DNA of 64,000 nt from Macrostomum lignano (GCA_002269645.1 NIVC01003266.1:44170-108169); one strand, 5' to 3'; shown: positions 6,066 to 35,477, counted from the first letter of the stretch. The notes: generated by a model not told the origin, from the sequence alone. A program made the numbers and translations.

Positions 6066-9000
6066 TTAGTCATTATAAATATGCCAAAAAATGTATATTA
6101 TTGTCATTATAAATAATACTAGTAATAACATTATTATTATTATTATGGCATAATTAATTTTATTAATATAAGCTATTTGGGGATAACATTTTTTTGTTTT
6201 TCCATTTACTTTATGTTCAATACCTTCTTTGTCAATAACATTAAGTCTGTTTTGCACTTCTTTTGCTAAGCCAGCAACATCGTTATTGAATGGGTAGTCG
6301 TCAATACAGAGTACATCATAAAGTGCCATCAGCAACCGGCTGCCGTCCTTCTCCTGCCATCGGCTGGCATAGCCTCTCTGGCTGCTGTAGATCACCGAGC
6401 AATTGTGCCGCAGCTTCAGTGGCAGTGAGGCTCCGTCTTCAGGTCCAGAGTCGAGCGCTGGGTACTTTTGCATCTCATAATGCTCTTCGGTGCCTCGGCA
6501 AGCGTGGTAAACTGTCAGAACGTCGTTCGCTGTACTTGACAATGGTCCTAACAGCTCTCTCAATTGGATATGCTCTGTTTGCTCTGTTCCAGTTGAAAAT
6601 CCATTTCTGTTCCCATGCGATGAAATGAACAGAAAAAAATCAAAACATTTTGTCTGATATTTATTCGTGATGTTCTCTTTAATGACGTCAAGAAGGTCTT
6701 GCTTCGAACCATTCTTTTTTTGGTACTGGATGAGCTTAGTACAACCAAGTATCTCGGCTACATCTCGGATGTTATCGCGGTCAGCGTCGTAGCCATCATG
6801 TAGCGTATCATTTCTGTTGTTGTTGTTGGTGATGTTGCTGTTGTTGTTGCTGCTATTGTTGTTGTTGTTGTTGGGATTCTCAAATTTAATTACGATGGAC
6901 ACCGCAATTCTTTCTTTTCTTAATACTGAAATGAAAAGCGCAATTAAAAAAAAACTTTTAGCTGCCTGTTATTCAAAATTACAATGTAAAATTCCTAAGG
7001 CATTCAGACATTTAAGTACCACTTACTTTGACCTGTTTCCGGGATCTTTGGCGATAAATAAATCTCTATTACGGTGGGCTCCGCAGTGCTTTGTTTTTCT
7101 CTCGATGCTGAAATGAAAAACGCAATGTGGAAAAGCATTATAGCTATCTGTCACTGAAAATCAAAATGTTTCTGACAACTCAGATAGTTACATTTGGTTT
7201 CCTGAAATCTTAGATCCCCACTCCTTACATCCCAGATCCCCACTCCTCACATCCCAGATCCCCGCTCCTCACATCCCAGATCCCGCTCCTTACATCCCAG
7301 ATCCCCGCTCCTCACATCCCAGATCCCCGCTCCTCACATCCCAGATCCCCGCTCCTCACATCCCAGATCCCCGCTCCTCACATCCCAAATCCCCACTCCT
7401 TACATCCCAGATCCCTTACTCCTCACATCCCAGATCCCCACTCCTTACATCCCAGATCCCTTACTCCTCACATCCCAGATCCCCGCTCCTCACATCCCAG
7501 ATCCCTTACTCCTCACATCCCAGATCCCTTACTCCACATCCCAGATCCCCGCTCCTCACATCCCAGATCCCCGCTCCTCACATCTTAGATTCCCGCTCCT
7601 CACATCCCAGATCCCGCTCCTTACATCCCAGATCCCGCTCCTAACATCCCAGATCCCCGCTCCTCACATCCCAGATCCCCGCTCCTCACATCCCAAATCC
7701 CCACTCCTCACATCCCAGATCCCCACTCCTTACATCCCAGATCCCTTACTCCTTACATCCCAGATCCCTTACTCCTCACATCCCAGATCCCCGCTCCTCA
7801 CATCCCAGATCCCTTACTCCTCACATCCCAGATCCCTTACTCCACATCCCAGATCCCCGCTCCTCACATCCCAGATCCCTTACTCCTCACATCCCAGATC
7901 CCTTACTCCACATCCCAGATCCCCGCTCCTCACATCCCAGATCCCCGCTCCTCACATCCCAGATTCCCGCTCCTCACATCCCAGATCCCCGCTCCTCACA
8001 TCCCAGATCCCTTACTCCACATCCCAGATCCCCGCTCCTCACATCCCAGATCCCGCTCCTTACATCCCAGATCCCCGCTCCTAACATCCCAGATCCCCGC
8101 TCCTCACATCCCAGATCTCCGCTCCTCACATCCCAGATCCCCGCTCCTCACATCCCAGATCTCCGCTCCTCACATCCCAGATCCCCGCTCCTCACATCCC
8201 AGATCCCCGCTCCTCACATCCCAAATCCCCACTTTTAGCTTGCGATTGTAGATCGTACTGTTAATTGTAAAATTCCGAAGGCATTCATACATTTAAGTGT
8301 CACTTACTTTGACCCGCTTCCGGAATATTTGGCAGCTGATGATCATCCTCGAGTTGTGGTTCTCCTTTGTACTCATTGTCAAACAGAAATCCGCTGTGGA
8401 ATTTAGAGTTCAGATGGGATTCAATCTCTATTTTGCACACTATTAGCAGTTTTGCTATCAGAACTGCGTGCTACATGTATCAGATACCAAAGGAGATTCG
8501 CCGGAAGGCAGCAACGCAGGCACACGGAGGGGGCGACTTAAATGATTTTTGTTTGAGAAGGTGCGCAACAAAAAGTTGACCCGTCTTCTTGAATTTCGTG
8601 TGCCTGCGTTGCTCCGCTCATTCGAAACCATAAGCTTCGTCGCTGCATTTGGGGCACTGTGCACGAAGGCGCGACGAATGTTTCTTACATTCTTAGAACT
8701 GACGTCTCACCCAAAATGAGACCCACTTTCATTATATAATTATTCTGCGCAGTCTTCTCAGTATTTCCTTACAAACTGCATGCCCTGCTTACGAGGGGAT
8801 GCTCTTATTAACTCTAAAAATTACAAAAACGAAGTTGAATGGCCTATAAATTTTCTAGAAAGTTTAGCGCTCCAAATCTTCCTATTTCAATTGGGCCTTA
8901 AAAAATAAAATAAAGTAGACTTTCACGGATAGGCTACAATAAAGTCTTGAAAATTCCCATGTTTCCTACTATACTCATGCAGCTTCAGCAGCAAATGATT

Positions 9001-9316
9001 CTCCCCATCAGAAGTACTCACGCCACATCCGTTGTCTTCTGTTGCTCATTGTGCCCAGTAGCATCCAGTTCGGCTCGCTGCTCTTCTAGCGATCGAACCG
9101 ACCCGTCATTCACGGGGTCACTAAACGCTACTGTTTCTGGCACTTGCAGCAATTTCTCGCGATTTCTCGCACTGTCAGCAGTTAATTGAGATGACTGTGC
9201 GTCGGCGCAATTGTACAACGCCAACACCTCGCTGCTAGCCTCGCCCTTTAAAGTTTAAATCATAATAAGAGTGTAGCCATATAGGAATTTGTTTGGGTTT
9301 GCTCGGAATTGCTCAT
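6066..9316 (-). CDS. Caspase-like (peptidase C14) gene, paralog 1, HACRG type; first exon frame-disrupted
   Basis: Catalytic exon 6925-6066 has IAVSIVI, FLFISSHG, VYHACRG and GYASRWQEKDGSRLL. Upstream exons 7107-7027, 8393-8308 and one ending at 9022 are phase-compatible. The ATG at 9316 matches paralog 2 but hits a stop after 18 codons. Confidence 0.8.
7213..8230. repeat. 22-bp minisatellite (ctcacatcccagatccccgctc) in a caspase-1 intron
   Basis: About 45 tandem units with minor variants. Confidence 0.97.
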
Positions 9317-9339
9317 AACGAAAAGGAGGTTTAAAGCGA

Positions 9340-9607
9340 AGATCTGGGATGCCAGGAGCTTAAAGTGGGATCTGGGATGCCAGCAGCTTAGAGTGGGAAT
9401 CTAGGATTCCAGGAGCTTCAAGTAGGGATCTGGGATGCCAGGAGCTTAAAGTGGGGATCTGGGATGCCAGGAGCTTAAAGAGGGGATCTGGTAGGCCAGG
9501 AGCTTAAAGAGGGGATCTGGTAGGCCAGGAGCTTAAAGAGGGGATCTGGTAGGCCAGGAGCTTAAAGTGGGGATCTGGGATGTCAGGAGCCTCAAGTGAG
9601 GATCTGG
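9340..9607. repeat. 28-29-bp minisatellite (reverse complement of aagctcctgacatcccagatccccacttt)
   Basis: About 9 units; same core as the 22-bp array and the 25630-26305 array. Confidence 0.93.
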
Positions 9608-9649
9608 CAGTGTGCGAAATCGGCAGGCTGCAGCCAAGCCGGCACTCAC

Positions 9650-12099
9650 GGATCCGCTGATGGGGGTGTACAGCAGGCAGTCGTTCCCGCCGGGCACCAG
9701 GCTGGTCTTCCGCAGGCTGCTCAGCGCCTCGCCCACGTGGAAGGTGCACTCGGCCACGCACTTCTGGCTGGAGCTGCCCAGCAGGCCGCCCCTGTCAAAC
9801 AGGGAGCCGCGCGCCGAGCCCAGGTCGCCAACATCGTCGGCGTCGTCTTCGACAGCGTCGGGCGGCAGGCGGAGGACGCAGATGTTGCCGAACTTGTCGC
9901 CGACAGCAACACTGAACTGGTCCAGCATGGCCAGGCAGGTCACCCAGCGGGGCAGCGAATCGTCAGCGAACACCAGCAGCTGGTTGTCCGAGGCTCGGTA
10001 GCGCATCCAGAAGACCGACTCCTGCCGGCGAGGGGTTTCGAGATTACTTGGTTATAGTGTTTTCGATACATATCGGCTTACTAAAAAAGTGGGAAACTAA
10101 AACTCCTTAATCAAATTGTTTTCGATACATATCGGCTTATGTATAACAACAGAAAGACGTTGGCAGATTAGGATTGTACACATATTAATCAAATATTTTA
10201 ATGTAACGATAAAACAGGAAATTCAACTCTTATTAGCTACTCATATTTATTCAGCATATACTTGGAGTTTTATGGAATAATTTGCTACGGAACGCAAGAA
10301 ATGAACTAATATTACAAAGCTCAGACTGTGCTAAAATTTCTCACCTGCACATCGGCAGCGACCACGCGATCGCCGAAAGCCGCCACGGACACAATATAGT
10401 TAGGCAGGGCTTTGGTCTCGCATTTGCGCAGCATTTTCTGCTTGCCCAAATCGTAGATTCGCAGCACGCGACTGACTGAGACCAGGACGCGACCCTGCGG
10501 GAATTATTCATTATTGTTTACAGAACTGCTTTGAGAATGGTGTCACTAGAGGTATAGGCAACCGCCATGTCCCTAATGGGAAAAATCTCCCACAAATCCC
10601 AACACAGGTAAAAATCTCCCACAAATCTCAATACAGGTAGAAATCTCCCACAAATCTCAATACAGGTAGAAATCTCCCACAAATCTCAATACAGGTAGAA
10701 ATCTCCCACAAATCTCAATACAGGTAGAAATCTCCCACAAATCCCAACACAGACAGAAATCTCCCACAAATCCCAACACAGGTAAAAATCTCCCACAAAT
10801 CCCAACACAGGTAAAAATCTCCCACAAATCCCAACACAGGTAAAAATCTCCCACAAATCTCAATACAGGTAGAAATCTCCCATAAATCCCAACACAGACA
10901 GATATCTGCCACAAATCCCAATACAGGTAAAAATCTGCCATAAATCCCAACACAGGCAGAAATCTCCCACAAATCCCAACACAGGCAGAAATCTCCCACA
11001 CATCCCAAGACAGGCAGAAATCTCCCACAAATCTCAAGACAGGCAGAAATCTCCCACAAATCCCAACACAGGCAGAAATCTCCCACACATCCCAAGACAG
11101 GCAGAAATCTCCCACAAATCCCATTCCAACAGACAGAAATCTCCCACAAATCCCATTCCAACAGACAGAAATCTCCCACAAATCCCAACACAGTTAGAAA
11201 TCTCCCTCAAATTCTCCTCCTCCCCTTTCCCAGAAATCTCTCAAAACTTCTCCTCCCCTCTCCCAGAAATCTCCCCAACACAGGTACAATTCGTAACCAG
11301 GTAGATAAAAGCGGTCGTGCACCTGAAAGGGGCACATAGCCTGAGGCGCGTCCTCCACAGCGGTCTCGTGCAGGAAGTCCAACCGTTCGAGAGCCCCAAC
11401 AACCCGATAGGTTCGCAGGACGGCGCCGCCAACGGACCTGGGCGCCAGGGTCATGTCCTTGACAATGCCAACTAGCAGGTAGGATTCCATGGGGTTGCAG
11501 GCGAACCGGCACAGGCAGATGCTGAGCGCTGCTTCATTCTGCTGCAGCCGGATAATCTGAGCAGTCTGGCCAGTGAGCGGTCGCATCACGCGGATCACGG
11601 AGGCCCACATGCCGGCGCCGGGCTTGGGCGCACCGAACACTGGCTCGGGCAGGTTCTCGCTGAGGAAGGCGGCGGCCATCTCCCTGACGAGCTGGGCGTC
11701 ACCAGATCGGTCACCGTCGGCTCCGGCCTGCTCAAGCATCTCCTGAGCAATCTGGCGCTTCTTCTGCTGCTTGCTGTCCTCAGTGAAGGCGTTGTGCTCA
11801 GTCTCGATGAGCACGGCTTGGCCGCTCTCGTGTAGCAGCAGGCGGCGCGGCGTGTACTGCAGGGGGAAGGTCACCTGCGGGCGGGGAGGGGGACACGGTA
11901 TGGTCAGCGGGTTGGATTTGAACTGGCGCCAAATGCTGCGGTCACACGTTGCTTGTATTTTAAGAAAGGCAGTGCTGGCTCACTAAAATTGTATAGTGCT
12001 TCTTCGTAAAGCCGATTTGTCTAACTGCCTACCTGCCTGACTGTGTCTGTCTGCCTGTCTGCCTAAGTGTCTGTCTGTTTGTCTGTCTGTCTGCCTAAG

Positions 12100-12148
<49 letters not shown>

Positions 12149-12181
12149 GATTCTGTCTGTCTGTCTGTCTGTCTGTCTGTG

Positions 12182-12224
<43 letters not shown>

Positions 12225-12417
12225 GTCTGTCTGTGTCTGTCTGTCTGTCTGCCTAAGTGTCTGTCTGTGTCCGTCCGTCTGTCTGCCTGTCTGTCTGTCT
12301 GTCTGTGTCTGTCTGTCTGTCTGCCTAAGTGTCTGTCTGTTTGTCTGTCTGTCTGCCTAAGTGTCTGTCTGTGTGTCTGTCTGTCTGTCTGCCTGTCTGT
12401 CTGTCTGTCTGTCTGCC

Positions 12418-12496
<79 letters not shown>

Positions 12497-12539
12497 TTCT
12501 GTCTGTCTGTCTGCCTGTCTGCCTGTTTGTGTCTGTCTT

Positions 12540-12574
<35 letters not shown>

Positions 12575-12617
12575 GCCTAAGTGTCTGTCTGTGTGTCTGT
12601 GTGTCTGTCTGTCTGTG

Positions 12618-12648
<31 letters not shown>

Positions 12649-12701
12649 GTCTGTCTGTCTGTCTGTCTGTCTGTGTCTGTCTGTCTGTTTGTCTGTCTGC
12701 C

Positions 12702-12756
<55 letters not shown>

Positions 12757-12767
12757 GTGTCTGTCTT

Positions 12768-12856
<89 letters not shown>

Positions 12857-12887
12857 TTCTGTCTGTCTGTCTGTCTGCTGTGTGTCA

Positions 12888-12957
<70 letters not shown>

Positions 12958-14770
12958 GTGTCTGTCTGTCTACCTGCCTGTCTGTCTGTCTGTCTGCCTG
13001 TCTGTCTGTCTATTGCAGCAGCAGCAAAACACAATAAACGCAAACCTGATTAAACACGGTGCCGAGTTTCTCCAGGCTGAGAATCCGCAAAGTGCTGGCA
13101 CTTATTGCCACAATGCCTTCCAGGCACTGCTCAGACGAGAAGCCGGACGCGAACTCCAGACTACCGTAGGACAGCGGAGTCAGGTGGAAGCGGCTCTGGT
13201 AGGTGTAATAAAGCCAAGATCGCGAGGAGATGGCGAGCACAGCTTCCGAGCCTTGGACGAACACTCGGAACAGTTTCACTGGCCGGCTGCCCAGGTACCT
13301 GGTGCGGGTGTCGGACAGGTCTCCAGTCACCGGGTCGATCAGAGCCCGAAGCAGCACCCCATTCTGCAGCCCGATGTTCAGGTAGTGCGTGCCGGCGCTC
13401 CAGCCCACGTCGCCTCCGCCACTGGCGCCGCCGGGAGCGTCCGGAGCGGCGCCTGATTGGAGAATTAATGTGAAGGGAATTATTTTTATACTACTGACAT
13501 GGTTCTGTTGTAAGTAGTAACAGGCAGTCTGTAGAGGCATAAGAGATAAAGCGAAAATCACTTTTCTCGCTAGACAAAAATCGAAATCATGAGCTGAAGA
13601 AACTCAGTAGTAGATAAACCAGAAACTCAGCAGTAGATAAACCAGAAACTCAGCAGTAGATAAACCAGAAACTCAGCAGTAGATAAACCAGAAACTCAGC
13701 ACTAGATAAACTAGAAACTCAGCACTAGATAAACCAAAAACTCAGCACTAGATAAACCAGAAACTCAGCAGAAGATAAACCAGAAGCTCAGCACTAGATA
13801 AACCAGAAACTCAGCAGTAGATAAACCAGAAACTCAGCACTAGATAAACCAGAAACTCAGCACTAGATGAACCAGAAACTCAGCAATAAATAAACCAGAA
13901 ACTCAGCACTAGATAAACCAGAAACTCAGTAGTAGATAAACCAGAAACTCAGCAGTAGATAAACCAGAAACTCAGCAGTAGATAAACCAGAAACTCAGCA
14001 GCAGATAAACCAGAAACTCAGCACTAGATAAACCAGAAACTCAGTAGTAGATAAACCATAAACTCAGCAGTAGATAAACCAGAAACTCAGCACTAGATAA
14101 ACCAGAATCTCAGCGCTAGATAAACCAGAAACTCAGCATTAGATAAACCAGAAACTCAGCATTAGATAAACCAGAAACTCAGCATTAGATAAACCAGAAA
14201 CTCAGCAGTAGATAAACCAGAAACTCAGCACTAGATAAACCAGAAACTCAGCAGTAGATAAACCAGAAGCTCAGCACTAGATAAACCAGAAACTCAGCAC
14301 TAGATAAACCAGAAACTCAGCGCTAGATAAACCAGAAACTCAGCATTAGATAAACCAGAAACTCAGCATTAGATAAACCAGAAACTCAGCAGTAGATAAA
14401 CCAGAAACTCAGCATCAGATAAACCAGAAACTCAGCACCAGACAAATCCCAGAGACCAACCTGACAAAGTAGATCCCAGCTGAGCCAGGCACAGAGACTC
14501 GGGTGGAGCCGGCAGCGCCTGCAGGCTGAGCGGCGCCAAGCAGTCCGCAGGGTCCAAGCTGACGATCCGGACGGTGTTGTCCGACAGTCCCACGGCGAGA
14601 AACCGGCAGCGCTGCTCACCGGGCGGCACCCGGCCAAGAGCCATGCAGACCACATCTGCAGACATGTCCTTCCGCTCAGTGTACTCGTTCAGCTGGCCGG
14701 CCGCGTCCATCTCGAAGTACACCAGCTCGCCGCCGGCCAGGGCGATGGCCACCTGGCGTTGGTTGACGTT
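9650..14770 (-). CDS. SF3B3: Splicing factor SF3B3 (SAP130) gene fragment, 5 exons, about 591 open codons, N- and C-terminal exons not found in the window
   Basis: Exons ~14770/14752-14461, 13452-13046, 11874-11323, 10494-10345 and 10021-9650 splice in frame. They encode [34 protein letters not shown]...[39 protein letters not shown] and [11 protein letters not shown]...GDKFGNI, all characteristic of SF3B3. Confidence 0.95.
10581..11190. repeat. 29-bp minisatellite (aaaaatctcccacaaatcccaacacaggt) in an SF3B3 intron
   Basis: About 21 units. Confidence 0.96.
12025..13010. repeat. (CTGT)n microsatellite in an SF3B3 intron
   Basis: About 1 kb of ctgt with gcctaagtgt interruptions; source of the SVCL ORFs. 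Confidence 0.98.
13595..14430. repeat. 23-bp minisatellite (agataaaccagaaactcagcagt) in an SF3B3 intron
   Basis: About 36 units; period 23 measured (13612 to 13635). Confidence 0.97.
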
Positions 14771-14903
14771 GGATCAGGTGGAGCACATGTGCCAATACTA
14801 AGGCCACTGTATATTAAGTCCTTACCCCAATGTACACCCCGTGTTAGTCTGAAAGATCCGTTGCCATTTTTCCACCATTCGAACTACCAAAAGGGGGGGG
14901 GGA

Positions 14904-15176
14904 ATTCCGCGCCTGACAATTTTTTGCTGCGCGCCGATGAAATTTGGAGGCTTAGCAAAGCTGCACTGAGGCACAGTGCTGATTGGCGCACAAGGGTGTA
15001 TTGAACACACTAGCGCTTATGAAAAATATCCTACCTTCTGGCAAAATCATCTAATATTTCGACAGTCTATAAGGATGGCAACTTGATTCTTGTTTGAGAA
15101 GTTGCGCAACAAAAAGTTAGCCTGTATGCCTGCGTTGCTCCGTTTCGGCGCGGCAAAAAACTGTCAGGGGGCGGAA
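14904..15176. mobile_element. MITE-like element with ~33-bp imperfect terminal inverted repeats
   Basis: attccgcgcctgacaattttttgctgcgcgccg (14904-14936) is the near reverse complement of tcggcgcggcaaaaaactgtcagggggcggaa (15145-15176). The interior motif gcgcaacaaaaagtt...gcctgcgttgct recurs at about 8560-8615 and 28625-28670. No TSD established. Confidence 0.6.
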
Positions 15177-15561: not shown

Positions 15562-18500
15562 CAGTGGCGGATCCAGGGGGAGGGCGGGGAGGGCGGCCGC
15601 CCCCCCACTTTTGCCTTGGCTGGACTTGTACAAAATGGAGGTATTTTAATTTTGGGCTTAATTTGAATTTGAACCAACGCAAAAAGTTTCACTTCTATTC
15701 TACAATATTTTCATTGCTTCTATCGCTCTATGGGTCTGTCTGTCTGCAGCGAGTCTGCTTTTTCTTGGAATGTAATAAAATTACATCGAAAGTAGAAGTG
15801 CTTTCCAACTGGAACAGCAATTCACGAGCAGCAGTTAGTCTTAGTCAGTGCAGGAATTAGCTATTAAGTGTTTTACAGGTGTTACAGTGTACATTCAGTG
15901 CAGACACCTATTATAAGGAAGGCCTAGCCTTGGGATAAGACAGGGGCACTGGGGCAGGGTCGGTAAATAAAATAAAGTAGAGCGGCTTAGTGGCTCAGTC
16001 CCTTAGTGTGAAAAAAACGCTTTTGTCCTCCCTTATTTGGGGTTCAGACTTCAATATTTCTGAGCAATGTACATTTCGAAAACTAAGTGACTGAACTAGA
16101 AGTAAGAAGTAAGAATTTAGGGGAGGAGAGTGGGGTGGGGACTCCTCTGGGCACAGAAGCCCAAAAAGTTAATTGAGCTTTGGCCCTGGGCATACGAGTA
16201 AGCATAAATAAAAGCAAGGGTACATAGGAATTTAAATGCACAAGAGACAAGATCGTGACAAGGAATTGATACGGATTGAAGGATCAATACAAAATCACAA
16301 AGAATGAGGCGAGCATCTTCACCATTACAGCATGACGCAAAAGAGACAGAAATTGCTGACGCATTTTTTGCTACCCCATCTGGTCCTGCTACTAGTTCTG
16401 CCACAGCCGAGATACCAATTTCTTCCTCTGCAGCTACTTATACTGAGGTACATGTACCTACGAATTCTTCTGCCGCTGCTTCGGAACTGCAATTTGCTGA
16501 TACTTTTAATTCAGACCAAGCTGAAGCCAGTCCCTCTGAAAGCAATGCTAATCTTAATGGAGTTACCAGAGAAGCGGATGAGGTACAAGTGAGCAAGTTG
16601 TCTGACTTTGACATAGGTCTATTTGACCCTGCTGCTGCTGCTGACAGTGCCACTAAGTTAGCTTTCTTGACGCAAACGTGGGAGCCCCCTAGTACTTACC
16701 CAATGCCATTTGAAGAGCGAAAAACAAAGGGAAAAATCGAAAAGAGATTCTTAAGGCACAGTCATCTAACCGAAAAACCCTGGTTAGCATATTCACATGT
16801 GAAGAGTGGCTTGTTCTGCAAAGTTTGTGTGCTATTTGGTACTCAGCAAGGACAACAAGGTCACCTATTGGGAAGACTAGTGCATGAGCCATTGCAAAAG
16901 TACGCAAGACTCTTGGGAGCCAATGGCTATCTCTGTGCTCATGAGCATACAAACAACCACAAAGACAATGTACTAAGGGCGCAAGAGTTCAAAAGCGAAT
17001 GGTGCCAGAGCAACATATTGATAGTCGATTTGCTACACAGAGGCAGGAGCAGATTGCAAAGAACAGGCATATCCTCAGCTCCATTGTGCGTGCCATTCTA
17101 GTCTGTGCAATGAGTGGAACTGCTCTTAGGGGACACCGAGATGATCATAGTGTGCTAGAGACTGCCGACCGACCAGGCCAGAATGATGGTCTCTTTCGAG
17201 AGATCCTGCGAGCGATGGTGGACACAGGAGATAAGAGGCTAGAGGAGCATCTGCGCTCTGGACCGAGTAACGCAAAATATACTAGCAAGACAATTCAGAA
17301 TGAGCTGATTGAGTGCATCGGAGAAGTGATTCTGGACCGCCTGAAGGAGCGGATAAACAGTGCACAGTTTGTGTCCATCCTGGCTGATAAAACAACAGAT
17401 CAGGCCACAAAGGAGCAATTGACAGTATGTGTTCGCTATGTGTTTGATGGAGCAATTTTCGAAGACTTTCTGGGATTCGCCATTGCAGAGGACATGACTG
17501 GAGTTGGACTTGCGTTTGCGAGGACATTCTGTCCCAGTTCGTCACACTCGGTATTCCCTTAGAAGGGCGGCTGGTTGGATTGGGATTTGATGGCGCCAGT
17601 GCAATGAGCGGCAAGTTCAAGGGAGCTCAAGCAATTATCCGAGAGAAACATCCTATCGCCATCTATATTCATTGTGCTGCGCATCAACTCAATCTGGTCA
17701 TCAGCAAGAGCAGCGAAGTCCCTGGAATCAGAAATGCGTGGGGAAACATCCAAGAGCTGGCAAAGTTCTTCAACAGTTCTGCCCAGAGAGTGAAGTGTCT
17801 GGAGGACATAGTGAAGTCAGAGAACCAACAGGCCAATACCCGTCGAGTGAAGAACTTATGCGATACTCGCTGGATTGAAAGACATGATGCGGTTCTAACA
17901 AGACATTTGCTGATACCAATGACGCAAGCTCTTGAAGAAATTCGTGAACATTCCAACCCAGAAGCATCCAGGAATGCAAAAGCTCTGCTTAATTCAATGG
18001 ACGCAGAGTTTCTGGTATCAGTTGTGGTTCTGGATGCAACATTGACTCTCACCAAGGGATTGGCAGAAGCACTCCAGAAGAGCGCAATTGATTTGCTCAG
18101 TGCCAGGACTCTAATTGCGGATGTGCAAGAGCAACTGCAGAAGTGGCGAGAAGAGTCTGCAGAGAAGTTTGGTGAGCTCTGGGAGAAGATTCTTGAGACT
18201 GCAAAGGCAATTGAAATCGATGTCACTCCTCCTAGGCGGGTTGCACGTCAGAAGAATCGTGCCAATATTCCTACTACTGATACGAAGGACTACTGGCGTT
18301 TGGTCATCTTTGTTCCCTTCTTGAATGGACTACTGGTCAATCTGCAAGACCGATTTTCCCGCCTTTCTGACGTTGCTGCTGGACTCAGTGCCCTTATCCC
18401 AGCAACAGCCAAAAAGCATGTAAGTCCATTCATTCAGCTCAAGCCATCAGTGCAGCACTTTGCTTTAGTTCTACCAAGCCAGGAGGAAGAGGAGGTTGAA

Positions 18501-19797
18501 GCAGAATTTAACCAGTGGATGCGACTTTGGCAAAGGGAGGACCCACAGAAATGGCCCACAACTTTGACTAAGACCATCTTGGAGTGCGACCATAACCTGT
18601 TTCCCAACGTCAGCGCCCTCTTGAACATTTATGCAACATTGCCTGTCTCCACTGCCACTGGAGAAAGATCTTTCTCTTTGCTGAAATTCTTAAAGAATTA
18701 CTTGCGCAGCACAATGGGAGAAGAGCAGTTGAATGGACTCGCATTGGCCTTCATCCACAGGGACATGATTTGTGATACCGCAGGCACAATATCTGCTACT
18801 ATTGAGAAGTTTCTGTCAAAGGATGTCAATCGCCGGGCCTGCTTCAACTACTAATTGCTTTAGGGCAGTGACTGAAACTGACATAGTGTCCAATCATTTT
18901 ATTTGAATATTCATTCAATTTAATATATGTAAATTCAAAAGTTATAGTTGAAAATTGTGTATTACATACGAGCTATATACTCAGCAACATTGAAAAGTCG
19001 CCACTATATGCGCAAGTGAGCAATTTCCCTTGGACTATTCTGAAAAGAGAAAATGGATCGGGGTAGCTTTAAATTAATCCATCCAATCCTCACACACCAC
19101 TCCTCCCCACTTCATTCCTCTCAACTCAAGTCTGCCATGGTGTAGCTACGAGCTAAGTTGCATCACTCGCAAAGATTTAGAGACTTTACCTTCACTCAAA
19201 AGTGGCGATCATAGATGGAATCTTCTACATGTATGATGGTGACTTTTCAATGTTGCTGATTGTCTTCTAGACAGACACTAGATAGTATAGCTCATATGTA
19301 TAATGTATTGTTTTTATGTTGCTTCAGTTCCTGCTCCAGTTTGCTTTCATCCCTGCATGCATGCATCATACTTGTACAAACAAGTAGTTGTAATAATGTG
19401 TTAAAATTTAAATGCTGCTTTTGACACAACAAACTGCTAATGCCCATTTGCAATGCCAATTGTGTTGCCTCATTATATTCGAATATGATTGAATCAACAA
19501 TAACAATAAGTGTCAGCAGGGAAAGCATCCAATAAGTGACTTAAAATCCACTCCTCTACTAAAAAGCTGCTTATTAACTTTCTCATTTTTTAATGCTCTT
19601 CCACACTGCATGTAATGATAAAAATATAAATGAAATTTAGTGATTCAAACAAAATTAAACTTTTGCAATCAATTGAACTGAAATAGCTAAAAATCTTTTT
19701 TGTATATGAACAAAATATTACTTTTTTTCTAGTTTCAGTTTTGGTTTCAGTATCCAAAAATCCACCCCCTACTTTAAAAATCCTAGATCCGCCACTG
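15562..19797 (+). mobile_element. Full-length hAT DNA transposon (Tip100/ZMYM1-PRKRIR-like), 4236 bp
   Basis: TIRs cagtggcggatc(c/t)ag at 15562 and its reverse complement ending at 19797. Perfect 8-bp TSD GTTAGGGT at 15554-15561 and 19798-19805. Internal transposase. Confidence 0.95.
16304..18854 (+). pseudogene. hAT transposase split into three frames by two frameshifts (about 16995 and 17515)
   Basis: WLAYSHVKSGLFCKVC zinc-finger-like segment; ALRGHRD...NAKYTSKTIQNELI...SILADKTTD (DUF4371-like); GFDGASAMSG, YIHCAAHQLNL, CDTRWIER; and hATC-like ATLPVSTATGERSFSLLKFLKNYLRSTMGEEQLNGLAL. Confidence 0.9.
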
Positions 19798-20919: not shown

Positions 20920-21180
20920 AACTAGTATTACCAAATTGATAGCTGCGCCATAAGTAGCCCTATAACCACTATACTCTTGCCAATCTATGTATGGCTCATT
21001 GGAAATAGTCGAAACTGCCCTGTGCCCTGTGGTTTTACAAGCGCTACATTGATGACATGTTTACCATGCTTGACAAATGGAAGGACCATTGAATTTTTCA
21101 ATGTCATCAATTCCACCTACCCAAATTCACGCCTGAAGGTAAAGAAAAGAAGCTTCCTTTTCTGGACACTAAGGTTGACT
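20920..21180 (+). mobile_element. Degenerate Penelope-like reverse transcriptase relic
   Basis: With frameshifts it reads YYQIDSCAISSP...LANLCM...FYKRYIDDMF...FNVINSTYPN...KLPFLD, matching the PLE RT pattern GxxMGSP/LANxxM/RYVDD/LPFLD. Confidence 0.7.
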
Positions 21181-23639: not shown

Positions 23640-24360
23640 AAATTAAGACACGCCCCACACACACCGCCCGCCGTGCAGCGCTAAACATTAAAACAAATTG
23701 GACTATAACTGAAGACATTTCAAAATGCGTTGTTCGTTTAAGCTTCAAGTTTTTAATTAATTTAGTTTTTTATTTTAAAATATGAGGTTCGGTAAATAAT
23801 AAGTAGTATAAGTAATAATTATAATAAAGACCATCGTTATTTGTTCGGTACCGGGGAAATAATGTTTGCGCTATTTGTCCGGCGCCGGACGAATAACGCT
23901 GGTGTTATTTCTCCGGTAGGCCTATACCAAAATAGCCTAGTGGTTGTACCGGTAATTTATCAGGTGGTCTGCATACACTTGTGCCTAAAGCCAAGGGAAA
24001 AAATAACGGACTAAAACGTATTTTTAAGTCACTTAAGTCAATTAGGGTTACTATACAAATCACCTCAAAAATTGACGTTAGGGTTACTAGCTTGGCAACT
24101 TTTGGTATACCGGAGAAATAACACCAGCGTTATTCATCCGGTACCGGACAAATAACGGGGGCCTATAATAAAATAACAATAATGTAATTTTAATAATGAA
24201 AATGACAATAAGAAAAATAATTATGACCTTTCGTATAACAATTGAAGTTATTTATTTCGTTAATCTTACAACACTTAATTTTTTATGCAATCAAATACTG
24301 CATTGACAAAAAATGTTACAATGTGTAGCGCTGCGGGGCGGTGCGGTACGTGTTTTAGGG
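23640..24360. mobile_element. Palindromic foldback/MITE-like element, about 720 bp
   Basis: tatttgtccggcgccggacgaataacgctggtgttatttctccgg (about 23872-23917) is inverted at about 24110-24157; outer arms ccgcccgccgtgcagcgcta and tagcgctgcggggcgg are also inverted. Confidence 0.7.
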
Positions 24361-24959
24361 AGACCCTTCAGACAGTACATTCAAAACAATCATCTGTAAC
24401 TTTTAACAAAATTTACCTGCTTCAACCATCTTTTTACCAAATATTTACGCAATTGTTTGGTGTTGAATGAGCTTCAATATTTTTACTTAAGTAAAAAACT
24501 TTTTGAGATGCATTGATTCAAAAATTGCTTAGCGACACTCTGATTAGACATCGCTTTACCGTTGACTGATTTTTTTCGATCGTAGCAGCCTAAAAGCAGT
24601 AGCTGGTTTAAAAATGCTTCAATTTACTTTTTACGCATGTCTCAGCTTTAAAATGACACCTCAGGCGCCGCAAGACAGCTCTGGTGCTGAGATATTCGAC
24701 ACTAAACATTGCATGCTTTGCGCGAACTCTCATTCGGAAACTTTACAACTTTTTTATCGATATTTGTTCAGCTGCTGTGTCCTTGTTTTTCATCACAATA
24801 TCGTCAAATTCTATTTGGGCGACAAGACGAGCCCCTTTCATTCCTACGGATACGGATACCCTTTCATTCCTATGCTTGAAATGTCCAGGGGCAGATCAGA
24901 AAAGCACTTGAACTATCTGGGCGGATAACACAAGACACGGATATCCGAAACTATAACAC

Positions 24960-25545
24960 CGGGGTGCTGGGAAAGGGTCGCCACGGCTCTCCCTCCAGAC
25001 ACGATGCAGTAGCCGTAACAGAGGCGGAGTTGATTTGGGACCCGTCAGTGAAGCAGTGGACTTCACGGGGTTTCCAGTTGTCCCTTTCTTTGTGACAGGG
25101 TGGAATGCTGGTTTCGAATTTGAGCGGAGGGCAGAGCGTGAACGGGATTCCGTCCGAGAGGATCAGCAGGCCTCCCACTGCTTCCAGGTCTCGCTGCAGG
25201 CTGTCGCCGTGCGGCCGGAGGTTCCGCTTTCTGAAGGCGAACTGCTTCTGGATTTGGACACGTTAAGCAGACGGCGGGTGGTCTTCATTGCCTCCCCTCT
25301 GACAAAGAGGTCAAGGGGGGAATGTCCAGGAGGGAGTTCATGCTAGCAAAGGGTGCAGAGGGAGCCGTGCTCGTGGTAGCTCGACAAGCGCGGCCTTGCA
25401 CCCTGTTAAGAGCAACGAGAGGGTAAGAAGGATTCAAAGGAGGAAAGAAGGTAGCCCTTTCACCTCTAGGGCACTGTTCCAAATGAAGCCGGCAAAAGAG
25501 AAGGCCTCCTGTCTAACAATGGCAGTGTAATCCACCAGAGGCGGC
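24960..25545 (-). mobile_element. Non-LTR retrotransposon fragment (RT thumb plus RNase H; R1/Loa/I-group-like)
   Basis: Frameshifted TAIVR..., LNRVQGRACRATT...APFASMNSLLDIPPLTSL (thumb motif) and VHCFTDGSQIN (RNase H first acidic motif). Confidence 0.7.
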
Positions 25546-25629
25546 GGGCAGCGCGAATGCGCCAAGCAATGAGATGCGGCTCACCCCCTTATATCAAACT
25601 ACTATAATTTTACCAGGTGTCAACTTGAA

Positions 25630-26305
25630 GCTCCTGGCATCCCAGATCCCCACTTTAAGCTTCTGGCTTAATATATATCTATATTAAAGATATCCCCACT
25701 TTAAGCTCATGGCATCCCAGAGATCCCCACTTCAAGCTCCTGTCATCCCAGATCCGCACTTTAAGCTCCTGACATCCCAGATCCGCACTTTAAGCTCCTG
25801 GTATCCCAGATCCCCACTTTTATCTCCTGTCATCCCAGATCCCCACTTTTATCTACTGACATCCCAGATCCCCACTTTAAGCTCCTGGCATCCCAGATCC
25901 CCACTTTTATCTCCTGACATCCCAGATCCGCACTTTAAGCTCCTGACATCCCAGATCCCCACTTTTATCTCCTGACATCCCAGATCCACACTTTAAGCTC
26001 CTGACATCCCAGATCCACACTTTAAGCTCCTGACATCCCAGATCCCCACTTTTATCTCCTGACATCCCAGATCCCCACTCTAAGCTCCTGACATCCCAGA
26101 TCCCCACTCTAAGCTCCTGACATCCCAGATCCCCACTCTAAGCTCCTGACATCCCAGATCCCCACTTTAAGCTCCTGACATCCCAGATCCCCACTTTTAT
26201 CTCCTGACATCCCAGATCCCCACTTTAAGCTCCTGACATCCCAGATCCCCACTTTAAGCTCCTGACATCCCAGATCCGCACTTTAAGCTCCTGACATCCC
26301 AGATG
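25630..26305. repeat. 29-bp minisatellite (aagctcctgacatcccagatccccacttt)
   Basis: About 22 units, inverted relative to the 9340-9607 array. Confidence 0.96.
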
Positions 26306-26707
26306 TCAGGAACTTGCAGCAATGCTAGCGCTCGCATTCAAACTGACAGGCGTTTTTTTACTCAATTTCTAGGAATGAGCAGCTAATCGATATTAAGTAC
26401 TGGTGCTGAGTATGCTGTGGCTTATTTATTTTTCTAATCAGTTTAAGTATGGACAACCAGCTGCCTTAGCGATGTGCAGCAATTATGTGCAGGCAGAAAA
26501 GAAGCAGAAATAACACGACTTTGATTTTTCCTGAGATGTTGCAATCTCTCTGGCATCAACTTTCTTTTATGCCATCACCATGAGAACACACAAATCAAGT
26601 TTAATTTTTCCAATAGATTGACACTTTATTAATTTTCTTACAATAATAATTAATTTTATTTCATACAGTATTATTAATATTAATAATATTAGTCATTAGT
26701 CCTTATA

Positions 26708-29679
26708 CTATTGTATATTATTGTCATTATTAATGGCACTCGTAACAATATTATTGTTATTAGCATTATTAATTTTATCAGTATAAGCTATTTGGGGGTA
26801 ACACTTTTTTATTATTCCATTAAATTCATGATCAATTCCATATCCATCAATATAATTCAGCCTTTTTTGGATTTTTTGAGCTAAGCCAGCAATACTCGTA
26901 TTGTTATTGAATAATCGGTAGCCGTAAAAACAGAGTACATACCGCACGGCCCTCAGCAACCGGCTGCCGTCCTTCTCCTGCCATCGGCTGACGTAGCCGC
27001 TCTGGCTGCTGTAGATCACCGAGCAGTTGAGCCGCAGCTTCAGTGGCAGTGAGGCTCCGTCTCCACCTTCACCGTCTCCATCGTCTCCAGAGTCGAGCGC
27101 TGGGTCCTCTTGCTTCACGAAATGCTCTTTGGTGCCTCGACAAGCATGGTAAAATGTCAGAACCTCGTCTGCTGCCCTTGACAATGGTTCCAACAGCTCC
27201 CTCAATCGGACATGCTCTGTTCCAGTTGAAAATCCATTTCTGTTCCCATGCGATGAAATGAACAGAAATACTCTTGCCACATGTAGCGGACATTTCTCTC
27301 TGATAAACTTGAGCAGTTCTTGCTTCGATCGGTCACCAGGTTTGTACTCCAAGTTGTCAGTACAACCAAGTTTCTCGGCTACTTTTCGGATGTATTCGCG
27401 GTCAGCCTTGTAGCCATGTTCACATTCGGACGTATCGTTTCTGTTGGCATTCTCAATTACGATGGACACCGCAATGCTTGTTTCTGTCGATACTAAATCT
27501 AAAACGCAATTTGAAAAAAGCACGTTTAGCTGCCTGTCATTAAAAATAAAAATGTTTCTGACATCCCAGATGGCCACAGTTGGTTTTCCGAAATCTTGGA
27601 TCCCCGCTCCTCACATCCCAGATACCCGCTCCTCACATCCCAGATCCCCACTCCTCACATCCCAGATCCCCACTCCTTACATCCCAGATCCCCACTCCTT
27701 ACATCCCAGATCCCCACTCCTTACATCCCAGATCCCCGTTCCTCACATCCCAGATCCCGCTCTTCACATTCCAGATCCCGCTCCTCACATCCCAGATCCC
27801 GCTCCTCACATCCCAGATCCCGCTCCTCACATCCCAGATATATCAGCGTTCAAAAAGCTGATATGCTATTACAAACTTATCATAGATATTTAATGTTAGA
27901 CCCACCCATTTGCCTGCACTAAAACAGCCACACAGAACCTGCGTGCCCTCTCTGTGTTAATTCATCTAACTAGCTAACTATGGAAAAAAGCAAATAAGAT
28001 GGGCGGGGCGGAAAAATATCACGCCACCACCTAACACTGCCCCCGAGCACAATGCCGAGCGTTATAAATACTCGTACAATGCAATTGGAAGAGCCGAGAC
28101 TCTCCACTGCCGAGTTTAGTAAAGTTTGAGCTCAAAACTAAGAAAAGGACTTGTCTCAGTTCTTCGAAGCTTCTGTCTGTCGTGGCAGAGGGGTAGCAGG
28201 CGTGTAAGGCTTGAGAGGCCATCAGAGACACCGATAAACGACCTGTTACAAGATACCCGCTCCTCACATCCCATATCCCCACTTTTAGTTTGCGATTGTA
28301 GATCGTATACTGTTCATTGTAAAATTCCTAAGGCATTCATACATTTAAGTGTCACTTACTTTGACCTGCTTCCGGAATATTTAGCGACTGATGATGATCC
28401 TTGACTTGTGATTCTTCTTTGCGCTCTTTGCCAATCAGAAATCCGCTGTAGAATTTAGAGTTCAGATGGGATTCAATCTCTATTTTGCAGACGATTCGCA
28501 GTTTTACAATATCAGAACTACATGTATCAGATTCAAAGCGGGATTCCCAGAAATGTTTTTGCTGCGCCGGAACTGAACGACGCAGGCACACGGCTGGCTG
28601 GCGACTCTTGTTCTTGTTTGAGAAGGTGCGCAACAATAAGTTGGCCTGTGCCTGCGTTGCTTCGCCCAGCGATGCAGAAAAATTGTGAGATTGGATTCCA
28701 CCTATGATAACTATGCTGCAAATTAACTCTGCTGACAGAATTCTCCCAACAAAAAAGTTTTTGCAAAACCTTATCTTAGAGTCAACCTCAAGCTTTAAGT
28801 TGAACATGTATCCCACTTTGCCTGTACGCTTGTCTATGTGGCTAGTGTTTTGCTAGCGGAGATTCTCACTAAGTAACATCCGCTGCCATAGACAATAAAA
28901 TTAACGCTTTGAGCCAGAGTGAGGTTGGTTGAACACTTTCTTCTACCATAGACAAAACGTGTCCCGCAAATACAGGGAGCGGAGAATACTCATAATCTCC
29001 GCGAATCTAGTCAATATTCTCCGCTCCGTGCATTCGTGGAATTAGGATACATTTCAAAAACCAACTAAAACTCTAACAACTGAATCCGAGGATTTGCCTC
29101 GGAGATTCTGCATCGACATTCTCCTCGTTTCAGTAGGTTATTATACATATTCCTACCGCATGAACAATAAGCTTCGTCGCTGGCGTTTGGGGGCATTGGG
29201 CACGAAGGTATGACGAATGCGCTTCCATTTTTAGAACTGACGCTTGCACCCATATGAGACCCACTTTAATTACAAAAAACTTTCTGCATAGTCTTCTCAA
29301 GTTCTCAGTCTCCTCTAACAAACTGCATTCCCTGCTCACAAGGGAACTCTAAAAGTCGCAAACATGAAGTTGAATGGCCCAAAAGATTTTCTAAAAGGTT
29401 TAGACCTCCAAATTTTCCTATTTCAATTGGGCCTTTAAAAATAAAATAAAGTAGACTTTCGAGGGTAGGCTACAAGAAAGTCTCCCCATCAGAAGTAACT
29501 CACGCTACATCCTTTGCCTTCTGTTGCTCATGGTCTTCAATAGCTTCCAGCTCGGCTCGGAGCTCTTCAAGCGATCGAACCACCAATTCCTCGCTGCCGC
29601 CGAAGCGGCCTTTAAAGTTTGAATCGTTATTGAATTTAAGCCTTATAGGAGTTTGTTCGGTTTGCTCAGAGTTACTCAT
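26708..29679 (-). CDS. Caspase-like (peptidase C14) gene, paralog 2, HACRG type, intact, 350 aa, 3 exons
   Basis: Exons 29679-29504, 28445-28360 and 27498-26708 total 1053 nt, open, with GT-AG sites. N-terminal MSNSEQTEQ...RSLEELRAELEAIEDHEQQKAKD; then IAVSIVIEN, FLFISSHG, FYHACRG, PALDSG and GYVSRWQEKDGSRLL. Confidence 0.85.
27598..27838. repeat. 22-bp minisatellite in a caspase-2 intron (same family as 7213-8230)
   Basis: About 11 units at the position equivalent to the longer array in paralog 1. Confidence 0.95.
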
Positions 29680-35440: not shown

Positions 35441-35477
35441 TGTTTGGGCGTTGCGAGATCGAATTTTCTAGAGTGCC

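Follow-up and report, generated by a model that had tools for sequence, protein, structure and literature searches.

A Macrostomum lignano clade of caspase homologues with an intact catalytic dyad and replaced S1 pocket residues

Introduction

Strict specificity for aspartate at the P1 position is a defining trait of animal caspases and is attributed to three almost invariant residues. These residues, R179, Q283 and R341 in caspase-1 numbering, define the binding of the substrate P1-Asp (PMC2064784; PMC11121540). Two caspase genes from the flatworm Macrostomum lignano raise the question of what a caspase becomes when all three positions are replaced and the catalytic His and Cys are kept. We analyzed a window of 64,000 nucleotides from contig NIVC01003266.1 (GCA_002269645.1, 44170-108169), and all positions below are counted from its first nucleotide. 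An earlier note had suggested that the two paralogs, P1 and P2, are active C14 proteases that are not Asp-specific, rather than products of random decay.

Gene structure

All exons and motifs described here lie on the minus strand. The P1 ORF (6066-6902) and the P2 ORF (26708-27577) are each the last exon of a three-exon gene. The span 6066-29679 given in the earlier note is not a single feature: two separate genes lie in it at a distance of about 17 kb, and the interval contains an SF3B3 fragment and a hAT transposon remnant. Adjoining P2 is a canonical comparator, paralog 3 (P0005). The last exon of this 615-aa gene (31497-33218) encodes D-R-V-G (32277-32300), SAHG (32091-32102), QACRG (31977-31991) and A-Y-R-N (31812-31823).

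The spliced P2 ORF is intact. Exon 1 (29504-29679) begins with an ATG at 29679 (MSNSEQTEQT...KDVA), is followed by a GTGAGT donor and is 100% identical to UniProt model P0003. Exon 2, GFLIGKERKEESQVKDHHQSLNIPEAGQ (28360-28445), has an AG acceptor and a GTAAGT donor. Exon 3 (26708-27498) holds the entire caspase domain, an Asn-rich tail and the stop codon. A second in-frame acceptor for this exon lies at 27483, and the ORF is 350 or 345 aa long depending on the acceptor; P2 is annotated on the contig as a 360-aa gene. The L1 segment C-E-H-G-Y-K-A-D (27401-27424) places Glu (E26) at the R179 position. S-S-H-G (27245-27256) supplies the catalytic His and the oxyanion-hole Gly, and H-A-C-R-G (27134-27148) supplies the catalytic Cys, with His replacing Q283. 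The L3 motif S-R-W-Q (26978-26989) has Trp at the R341 position and Arg at the W340 position. P-A-L-D-S-G in the inter-subunit linker (27086-27103) is a candidate Asp-directed processing site.

The P1 gene has an intact core and altered ends. In exon 1 (9022-9316) the remainder is not in frame with the ancestral ATG at 9316 (MSNSEQT): the ORF that this ATG opens ends after 18 codons, and two frameshifts in the same direction precede the open frame. The 3' half of the exon (VRSLEEQRAELDA...DVA) and its GTGAGT donor are conserved, and an in-frame AG/GGC at 9246/9245 might serve as a trans-splice acceptor. Exon 2, GFLFDNEYKGEPQLEDDHQLPNIPEAGQ (8308-8393), has conserved splice sites. Exon 3 (6066-6925) carries the caspase domain in an intact core ORF, with L-H-D-G-Y-D-A-D in L1 (6780-6803; His at the R179 position), S-S-H-G (6612-6623; catalytic His), H-A-C-R-G (6492-6506; catalytic Cys) and S-R-W-Q in L3 (6354-6365). 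A P1-specific poly-Asn/Ser insertion (6816-6878) lies between strand beta1 and N-R-N-D of loop L1, and the poly-Asn insertion in this loop is 18 residues long. The C-terminal tail, YAIIIIIMLLLVLFIMTIIYIFWHIYND (6069-6152), is frameshifted by 5 nt inserted into an (ATA)n run, and the ancestral Asn-rich tail is still readable in a different frame. P1 abuts the truncated SF3B3 fragment. Despite the out-of-frame ATG and the shifted tail, spliced P1 stays open for about 390 codons with intact splice sites, and its four lineage-specific changes at caspase-conserved columns are no excess over the three and four in other lineages. PacBio indel error may be the source of the frameshifts. SL trans-splicing may provide a non-canonical start; the SL sequence ends in ATG (PMC8629364). 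P1 is a rearranged copy, with start and tail frameshifted in the assembly analyzed, and is most likely either a duplicate disabled not long ago or a gene needing a non-canonical start.

Homology and phylogeny

P1 and P2 score 35.5 and 25.8 bits against Pfam PF00656, both above its gathering cut-off of 21.4 bits, and the family profile matches caspase-3 over residues 36-246 (E=3e-11). Foldseek searches with an AlphaFold2 model of P2 (pLDDT 83.5, pTM 0.84) returned caspase-7, -3 and -6 as top matches (E ~1e-10, TM 0.60-0.74). The resemblance of P1 and P2 to caspases is homology rather than chance. Pfam scores above the cut-off and a caspase-like alpha/beta model are what the Peptidase_C14 fold (clan CD) calls for. 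No variation occurs at H83, G84 and C119 of the P2 domain among 30 aligned caspases or in any of the four HACRG copies. The prodomain is short and has no Pfam domain match.

HACRG-type genes are present in four copies (P1, P2, P0001 and P0002) at three homeologous loci, all in M. lignano, and all four share HACRG, SRWQ and GSRL. We found no match to this pattern outside M. lignano. In a set of 1.84 billion representatives, M. lignano QACRG caspases come closest, followed by caspase-3-like proteins from mites and other animals. In a neighbor-joining tree, the HACRG clade (bootstrap 100) falls among metazoan caspases as sister to M. lignano QACRG genes (89.5), and the two lie within an M. lignano group with 100% support. 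An HACRG gene adjoins a QACRG gene at all three loci. P1 and P2 are members of a clade of effector-type caspase homologues with a short prodomain (MEROPS C14A fold). The clade, known so far from M. lignano alone, originated by tandem duplication from the neighboring canonical QACRG caspases. Among the 26 nearest caspases, loop L1 is covered in 24, of which 21 keep its arginine, and the L3 arginine is kept in most.

The S1 pocket

Two independent aligners, HMMER and MAFFT, agree on the register at the S1 positions. Caspase-3 R64 (R179) is matched by E26 in P2 and by the L-H-D-G His in P1, and Q161 (Q283) by the His of HACRG. S-R-W-Q aligns to S-W-R207-N (R341), and the interval bounded by the G-Y and D-G-S anchors contains no indel. 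Across the clade, Glu, His or Pro stands at the R179 position, and Q283 and R341 are replaced by His and Trp, respectively. Two additional arginines are present, one moved to the W340 position and one at the W348 position (G-S-R-L). The three residues of the basic S1 pocket of Asp-specific C14A enzymes (Arg179, Gln283, Arg341) are absent in both alignments, and all four copies have HACRG in place of the QACxG pentapeptide. The acidic S1 of metacaspases and paracaspases is absent as well, with His and Trp at the Q283 and R341 positions. We did not find HACRG as a caspase motif in the literature searched.

These results bear out most of what the earlier note had read from the motifs. SHG and the catalytic Cys are kept and HACRG replaces QACRG in both ORFs, S-R-W-Q stands in register with S-W-R-N, and the replacement of all three S1 positions, noted for two copies, recurs in four copies at three homeologous loci. 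The note's claim that L1 lacks an arginine holds at the site homologous to R179, two residues ahead of the Gly, but is too broad for the loop. Nine residues ahead of this Gly, P1, P2 and P0002 carry an Arg in N-R-N-D, and in P0001 the sequence S-R-P-P-G puts one three residues ahead.

The P2 model suggests how these segments are arranged. Its helix alpha1 begins six residues before the conserved Gly, an N-terminal extension that takes in the L1 segment, so the R179-equivalent is placed within the helix; in a model of canonical paralog 3 the helix begins directly after R-V-G. At S-R-W-Q in L3, pLDDT exceeds 90. P-A-L-D-S-G lies at the start of a low-pLDDT inter-subunit linker. The linker motif is conserved without exception as P-[AV]-L-D-S-G in the four copies. 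The alignment of its Asp to caspase-3 D175 is loose, with HMMER giving a different position. With E, H and P all occurring at the R179 position in the clade, a pocket that has lost its importance is as good a fit as a new one.

Proposed function and alternatives

The best explanation, which we put forward tentatively and as somewhat short of an even chance, is that intact HACRG members are competent, zymogen-regulated caspase-fold proteases that are not directed to P1-Asp, and that P1 is a rearranged copy. P2, P0002 and probably P0001 are the intact members, predicted from sequence to be catalytically competent cysteine proteases. Their S1 pocket would no longer be basic, and for this reason they would lack the caspase-like choice of P1-Asp. 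The two extra arginines may line S2-S4 and favor acidic residues upstream of the cut. The proteins would be synthesized as zymogens, and an Asp-directed cut at the invariant L-D/S-G of the inter-subunit linker would open them. This cut would be made by a canonical caspase, possibly the adjacent QACRG paralogue. The full scenario, in which a flatworm effector caspase became a protease with non-Asp P1 specificity that is still cascade-controlled through the linker Asp site, is possible but on balance doubtful. If true, it would represent a natural and recent "caspase to non-caspase" switch within Metazoa, and the surface omega of about 1 or more would fit a molecule in conflict, as in immunity or reproduction.

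Alternatively, the HACRG proteins could be regulatory pseudo-caspases that process no substrates and instead heterodimerize with neighboring QACRG caspases to tune their activation, as cFLIP does with caspase-8 and as proposed for caspase-12 with caspase-1. We consider this unlikely. The adjacent HACRG-QACRG pairs at all three loci would suit such a role, and the CFLAR-CASP8 cluster is a comparable arrangement of neighboring genes. So would the loss of the S1 triad, the lack of conservation at the R179 position and an omega near 1 over most of the surface. The single R341K change in mouse caspase-12 has been read by specialists as predicting a non-functional caspase, which may modulate caspase-1 (PMC11121540). 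Against this role, His-Gly and Cys-Arg-Gly are invariant in the four copies, and the His of HACRG and the catalytic Cys survive synonymous codon changes (CAT/CAC and TGT/TGC). The pseudo-caspases known to us have lost the catalytic Cys or His, and cFLIP has lost both; all four HACRG copies keep the two residues. Should the HACRG proteins be inactive, they would represent a new type of pseudo-caspase with a retained dyad.

It is quite unlikely, in our judgment, that the HACRG proteins are still acid-directed. Here the shifted Arg of S-R-W-Q, the His of HACRG and possibly an L1 Arg would rebuild a basic S1 pocket, allowing cleavage after Asp or Glu and autoprocessing at L-D/S-G. Every copy does contain at least one L1 Arg and an Arg beside the R341 position, its His at the Q283 position could be protonated, and the linker Asp is invariant. 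The position of the L3 Arg is already variable among M. lignano paralogues, shifted by +1 in P0007 (A-Y-S-R-P), whose S1 is otherwise canonical, and Drosophila DRONC (PFCRG) cuts after Glu and Asp (PMC2180229). Several features argue against a rebuilt pocket: no indel separates the G-Y and D-G-S anchors, an Arg one position earlier in the extended L3 strand should, judging from caspase structures, face S2/S4 rather than S1, the L1 Arg differs in position between copies, and the L1 segment is helical in the P2 model.

Selection and decay

Finally, the HACRG genes could be redundant copies drifting to pseudogenes, with their motifs kept by mutual gene conversion, in a hidden-polyploid genome in which most genes have three to four copies. 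Gene-wide dN/dS is 0.67-0.96 and differs significantly from 1 in no pair, about three quarters of the protein has an omega near 1, and P2 differs from its homeologue P0002 by 12 non-synonymous changes and one synonymous change. dS is 2-4 times lower in the motif-bearing center than in the flanks (0.14-0.20 vs 0.28-0.80), and P1 and P2 share an identical run of 57 nt. The low central dS means that motif conservation may partly represent gene conversion. The two 5' frameshifts and one 3' frameshift of P1, beside the truncated SF3B3 fragment, also point to decay, as does P0001, with its 5' frameshift and its annotation as partial.

Other signals oppose decay. ORFs of about 260-390 codons are open in all four copies at 17-24% nucleotide divergence, and under neutrality the probability of no stop codon is 0.003-0.008 per pair. 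The copies differ in length at many places, none of which breaks the core frame, and splice sites are conserved. At columns defined independently as conserved in other caspases, omega is 0.24 (p=0.001), 0.39 (p=0.04) and 0.68, compared with about 1 elsewhere. Variation within the HACRG family affects 16 of 58 caspase-conserved columns versus 82 of 168 others (Fisher p=0.006), and the variable residues fall in clusters (runs test, p=2e-4). We conclude that the HACRG genes stay open and that their caspase-core positions are under purifying selection. Decay of P1 alone is plausible, at roughly an even chance; decay of the whole clade is much less so, and we regard the decaying-duplicate explanation as distinctly improbable.

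The earlier note's view that the copies are not random decay is supported, with reservations. Open ORFs and purifying selection at conserved columns support it, and P1 has an intact core ORF, but P1 also carries frameshifts at both ends and the poly-Asn insertion. The note had proposed dN/dS between the paralogs as a check and listed a value near 1 among its refuting outcomes, and the gene-wide values do not differ significantly from 1. Overall, the note's reading is supported in part: its sequence observations stand, while gene-wide dN/dS, the low central dS and the P1 frameshifts weigh against it. The case for caspases with a rewired S1 pocket is drawn from sequence and modeling, with mixed signals of selection.

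Relation to known systems

The HACRG clade offers a natural experiment on the loss or re-targeting of caspase specificity. It could reveal a new output of the caspase cascade in a regeneration model organism with RNAi and transgenesis.

Effector caspases (caspase-3, -7 and -6; MEROPS C14A) are the top profile and structure matches and share the domain order, the short prodomain, SHG, xACRG, the G-Y...D-G-S frame of L3 and an acidic inter-subunit linker with D-S-G. The HACRG proteins differ from them in replacing R179, Q283 and R341, in having Arg at both W340 and W348, and in an L1 loop that is two residues shorter and modeled within helix alpha1. They also evolve very fast (omega 0.7-1), and their identity to solved caspases is 14-20% in Foldseek structural alignments.

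Drosophila DRONC (PFCRG) is likewise a metazoan caspase with a non-Gln first pentapeptide residue. It is a CARD initiator that keeps both S1 arginines, whereas the HACRG proteins lose both. Its P1 preference is changed to Glu as well as Asp, and the change at the Q283 position alters this preference (PMC2180229). Caspase-12 (R341K in mouse) and cFLIP resemble the HACRG proteins in having a damaged S1 or active site, in lying near active paralogues and in being proposed modulators (PMC11121540). Caspase-12 has one changed S1 residue; the HACRG proteins change three and keep the whole catalytic apparatus.

Metacaspases and paracaspases (MALT1) are also caspase-fold His-Cys proteases, and substitutions at the Q283 and R341 positions account for their lack of Asp specificity (PMC2064784). 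Their S1 is acidic, with Asp at the Q283 position and Asp or Glu at the R341 position, which gives Arg/Lys specificity (PMC2064784). The HACRG proteins instead have His and Trp, and their clade is nested among animal caspases rather than within either of those groups. A parallel pattern comes from two uncharacterized database caspases, P0022 (I-S-G / NACRG / S-F-G-N) and P0025 (L-H-A / NSCRG / S-Y-G-I), whose Pfam caspase domains score E=1e-39 and 1e-34. Both keep the dyad and replace all three S1 positions. Unlike the HACRG proteins, they carry Asn in place of Q283 and Gly in place of R341, and the neighbor-joining tree does not place them as close relatives.

Caspase homology and the S1 pocket

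The P1 and P2 ORFs (6066-6902 and 26708-27577, both on the minus strand) are 59% identical. As the earlier note had described, both contain SSHG, HACRG and S-R-W-Q, together with L-H-D-G-Y-D-A-D in P1 and C-E-H-G-Y-K-A-D in P2. Their Pfam Peptidase_C14 scores of 35.5 (P1) and 25.8 bits (P2) exceed the cut-off of 21.4. A single-sequence phmmer search of the PDB with P2 returned no caspase, only spurious matches to tau and designed-repeat proteins, and a family profile was therefore needed; it matched caspase-3 with E=3e-11 over residues 36-246. An AlphaFold2 model of the P2 domain was built from a 30-sequence alignment (pLDDT 83.5, pTM 0.84). Its best Foldseek matches were caspase-7, -3 and -6, Spodoptera caspase-1, a coral caspase and CED-3 (E ~1e-10, TM 0.60-0.74). 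P1 and P2 are real, though distant, caspase homologs.

The Asp-binding pocket of caspases is formed by R179, Q283 and R341 in caspase-1 numbering (PMC2064784; PMC11121540). HMMER and MAFFT gave the same register for these positions, and in this register all three are replaced in both P1 and P2, which bears out the central observation of the earlier note. R64 of caspase-3, the equivalent of R179, aligns with His in P1 and Glu in P2, two residues before the Gly of G-x-x-x-D. The Q283 position is the His of HACRG. S-R-W-Q aligns to S-W-R-N without an indel, which places Trp at the R341 position and Arg at the W340 position. The W348 position is also Arg (G-S-R-L versus G-S-W-F).

Gene structure

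The two ORFs are the third exons of three-exon genes. P2 is an intact gene, with exon 1 at 29679-29504 (ATG intact), exon 2 at 28445-28360 and exon 3 from 27498 (alternative acceptor 27483) to 26708, all on the minus strand. Its complete spliced ORF encodes 350 or 345 aa, and the assembly annotation gives 360 aa.

P1 is an intact core with broken ends. On the minus strand, exon 1 ends at 9022 and is followed by exon 2 at 8393-8308 and exon 3 at 6925-6066; the splice sites are conserved and the spliced frame stays open for about 390 codons. Two same-direction frameshifts lie between this frame and the ancestral ATG at 9316 (MSNSEQT), whose own ORF stops after 18 codons. At the other end, an (ATA)n run has gained 5 nt, and a hydrophobic tail of 28 residues now stands in place of the Asn-rich one. 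Loop L1 also carries an 18-residue poly-Asn insertion. We see about an even chance that P1, taken by itself, is a decaying redundant copy.

The N-terminal ~35 codons are unstable in all HACRG copies. P0001, a further M. lignano HACRG protein, has a 1-nt shift at its 5' end and a partial annotation, and P0002, the homeolog of P2, has a compensated double shift. Weak constraint is one possible cause of this instability, and indel errors in PacBio reads are another. Approximately 30% of M. lignano genes are trans-spliced to a leader ending in ATG (PMC8629364), and P1 has an in-frame AG at AG/GGC (9246/9245). We hypothesize that spliced-leader (SL) trans-splicing at this site could rescue the 5' frameshifts of P1. 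It does not serve as a general rescue, since in P0001 the corresponding AG lies outside the reading frame. Downstream, the 3' flank/UTR of P1 (5950-6070) is near-identical to that of P2 (26600-26710) over ~100 nt, AATAAA included. This conservation exceeds that of the adjoining coding sequence and is compatible with gene conversion as well as with a conserved regulatory element.

Genomic context and origin of the HACRG genes

Positions 21497-44035 of the window are 100% identical to contig NIVC01003266.1 of Macrostomum lignano assembly GCA_002269645.1, and the window ORFs match UniProt and NCBI M. lignano proteins at 99-100%. The DNA is eukaryotic, with GT-AG introns, numerous intronic minisatellites and transposon remnants. 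A 22-bp minisatellite (7212-8230 and 27599-27839) is common to intron 2 of P1 and P2. Further large intronic tandem arrays lie at 12044-13011, 13598-14437, 10583-11212 and 5146-5366; the arrays include (TGTC)n in ~246 copies and units of 23, 29 and 30 bp, and they give rise to many spurious long ORFs.

The HACRG-type proteins recovered all come from M. lignano. They are P0001, P0002 and two database models of P2, P0003 and P0004. Word-indexed searches of 5.8 billion proteins, and HMMER run exhaustively against 1.84 billion representatives, recovered no HACRG-type relative outside this species. The next-best matches were the M. lignano QACRG caspases P0007, P0008 and P0010 (E ~1e-13 to 1e-11), followed by mite tandem caspases and ordinary caspase-3-like proteins. 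In a neighbor-joining tree the M. lignano cluster genes form one group (bootstrap 100). Within it the HACRG clade (100) is sister to a QACRG clade (89.5), and P1 branches off first among the HACRG genes (88).

The gene directly upstream of P2 is paralog 3 (P0005, 615 aa; minus strand, 31497-33218, extending to ~34035), a caspase with a canonical S1 pocket (D-R-V-G, SAHG, QACRG, A-Y-R-N). It has an N-terminal region of ~330 residues without a Pfam match and an inter-subunit linker without any Asp. In two homeologous loci, L001 and L002, the HACRG gene is followed by a QACRG gene and then by SF3B3, which lies on the other strand. The homeolog of paralog 3 in L001 (P0006, 374 aa) is truncated ahead of the SAHG His. 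The tree, the canonical gene beside P2 and the HACRG-QACRG order of L001 and L002 together indicate that the S1 change is derived and arose after tandem duplication. The HACRG group is a Macrostomum-restricted, tandemly derived and fast-evolving caspase clade which has kept the catalytic apparatus intact and lost the canonical S1 triad.

P1 is not the ortholog of the second caspase gene in L001 (17173-18285) and L002 (17933-19842). These extra genes, one P0007-type of 370 aa and one of 550 aa, lie between the HACRG gene and SF3B3; they are QACRG-type (P0007, P0010-like) and have no counterpart in the window, and P1 groups within the HACRG clade. P0007 carries its L3 Arg one position further on, at +1 (A-Y-S-R-P).

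The surroundings of P1 appear rearranged. P1 lies immediately next to a satellite with a 29-bp unit and to a truncated piece of SF3B3 (9647-14767, minus strand; residues 549-1126 of 1217 by tblastn with human SF3B3). The fragment is internal only, without the N-terminal half and last exons that L001 has, and runs in the opposite orientation to the copies in L001 and L002. Either rearrangement left a pseudogene fragment here, or the assembly was joined through a satellite. The 29-bp minisatellite occurs at the 3' break of this fragment (9341-9607), directly adjoining the ancestral ATG of P1, and again downstream of P2 (25692-26304); it is also found within an SF3B3 intron of L001. This repeat was likely the substrate for the rearrangement that put P1 at its present site.

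Other features of the window include a hAT-family transposase remnant (16304-18854, plus strand) with DUF4371 and a hAT C-terminal dimerization domain, presumably inactive because it is split over three ORFs. On the minus strand, a TALE-class homeobox exon (Homeobox_KN) lies at 35005-35595, and its synteny with the caspase cluster recurs in L001. The minus-strand ORF at 905-1456 encodes a replication protein A OB-fold domain, and that at 52438-53691 matches SUEL lectin weakly, below the Pfam cut-off.

Predicted activity and specificity

We compared structural models of P2 and paralog 3. In the paralog 3 model (pLDDT 87.9), helix alpha1 starts directly after the Gly of R-V-G. The helix starts six residues earlier in P2, which would place the R179-equivalent Glu inside it (pLDDT ~78), and L1 therefore appears remodeled in P2. 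L3 of the P2 model is confidently predicted (pLDDT >90), and the inter-subunit linker is disordered (pLDDT ~54). The linker starts with an invariant P-[AV]-L-D-S-G, roughly at the effector-caspase cut site in a loose alignment to caspase-3.

The reading we tentatively favor, at somewhat below even probability, is that intact HACRG members are active proteases. They would keep catalysis yet no longer select P1-Asp, their Arg residues would now line S2-S4, and activation would proceed via an Asp-directed cut in the inter-subunit linker. We considered using proteins derived from Logan to gauge expression, but the housekeeping control SF3B3 was also without an entry, which makes absence uninformative.

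HACRG proteins might instead be regulatory pseudo-caspases that retain the dyad and partner the neighboring QACRG caspases. The pairing of HACRG and QACRG genes is compatible with such a role, as the intact catalytic apparatus is with proteolysis, and we regard this alternative as unlikely. Slightly less probable still is that HACRG enzymes retain acidic specificity through a shifted Arg together with the His. The earlier note had stated that the loop before G-x-x-x-D has no Arg; this is correct for the R179-homologous position but not for the rest of loop L1, where an Arg lies nine residues before the Gly (N-R-N-D) in P1, P2 and P0002 and three residues before it (S-R-P-P-G) in P0001. The differing placement of this Arg and the predicted helical Glu at the R179 position of P2 speak against retained acidic specificity.

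Selection and gene conversion

We analyzed selection over 226 aligned core codons. Nei-Gojobori omega (dN/dS) was 0.92 for P1-P2, 0.65 for P2-P0001 and 0.54 for P1-P0001. For P2 and its homeolog P0002 it was 3.5 (12 non-synonymous changes, 1 synonymous). Pairwise codon-model maximum likelihood gave 0.67-0.96 for the diverged pairs and 4.15 for P2-P0002. No pair differs significantly from 1, P2-P0002 included (LRT p=0.07-0.88). The earlier note had listed an omega near 1 among the findings that would count against it, and gene-wide omega is indeed indistinguishable from 1.

Other signals speak against purely neutral evolution. Under neutrality, 226 codons would remain stop-free at the observed divergence with P=0.003-0.008 per pair, and the residues that vary occur in clusters (runs test p=2e-4). 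Independently of the HACRG family, we used 26 other caspases to define 58 columns in which consensus reaches at least 50%. Variation affected 16 of these 58 columns versus 82 of the other 168 (p=0.006). Omega at the consensus columns was 0.24 (p=0.001), 0.39 (p=0.04) and 0.68 (not significant), and 0.88-1.15 in the remaining 168. P1 showed no excess of lineage-specific changes at the 58 caspase-consensus columns. We gave little weight to in-frame indels as independent proof of selection, because several fall in triplet repeats and protein-guided alignment forces the frame.

Gene conversion may contribute to motif conservation, as suggested by low central dS and long identical runs. dS is 0.14-0.20 in the motif-bearing exon center and rises to 0.28-0.80 in the flanking parts, a stretch of 57 nt is identical between P1 and P2, and the 33 nt coding SRWQEKDGSRL are identical in all 4 copies. 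However, the HACRG His (CAT/CAC) and Cys (TGT/TGC) are kept across synonymous differences. That the whole clade consists of decaying redundant copies homogenized by gene conversion is improbable, on a par with retained acidic specificity. The claim that these genes do not reflect random decay draws support from stop-free ORFs and constrained caspase columns, but not from gene-wide omega, and the interpretation in the earlier note as a whole is partly supported.

Comparison with other caspases

We examined the S1 positions in the 26 nearest caspases. The L1 Arg is kept in 21 of the 24 that cover this loop, and the L3 Arg in most. The Q283 position is more variable, with Asn and Ser common. The searched literature contained no description of HACRG as a caspase motif and nothing relevant under the M. 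lignano gene identifiers. In DRONC, a changed Q283 position accompanies a changed P1 preference (PMC2180229). In the nearest-caspase comparison, all three S1 residues are absent only in the HACRG clade and in P0022 (I-S-G / NACRG / S-F-G-N) and P0025 (L-H-A / NSCRG / S-Y-G-I). These two uncharacterized proteins are otherwise typical caspase-3-like proteins with an intact dyad and are unrelated to the HACRG clade. Their retained dyad and replaced S1 triad indicate that loss of the triad happened more than once.
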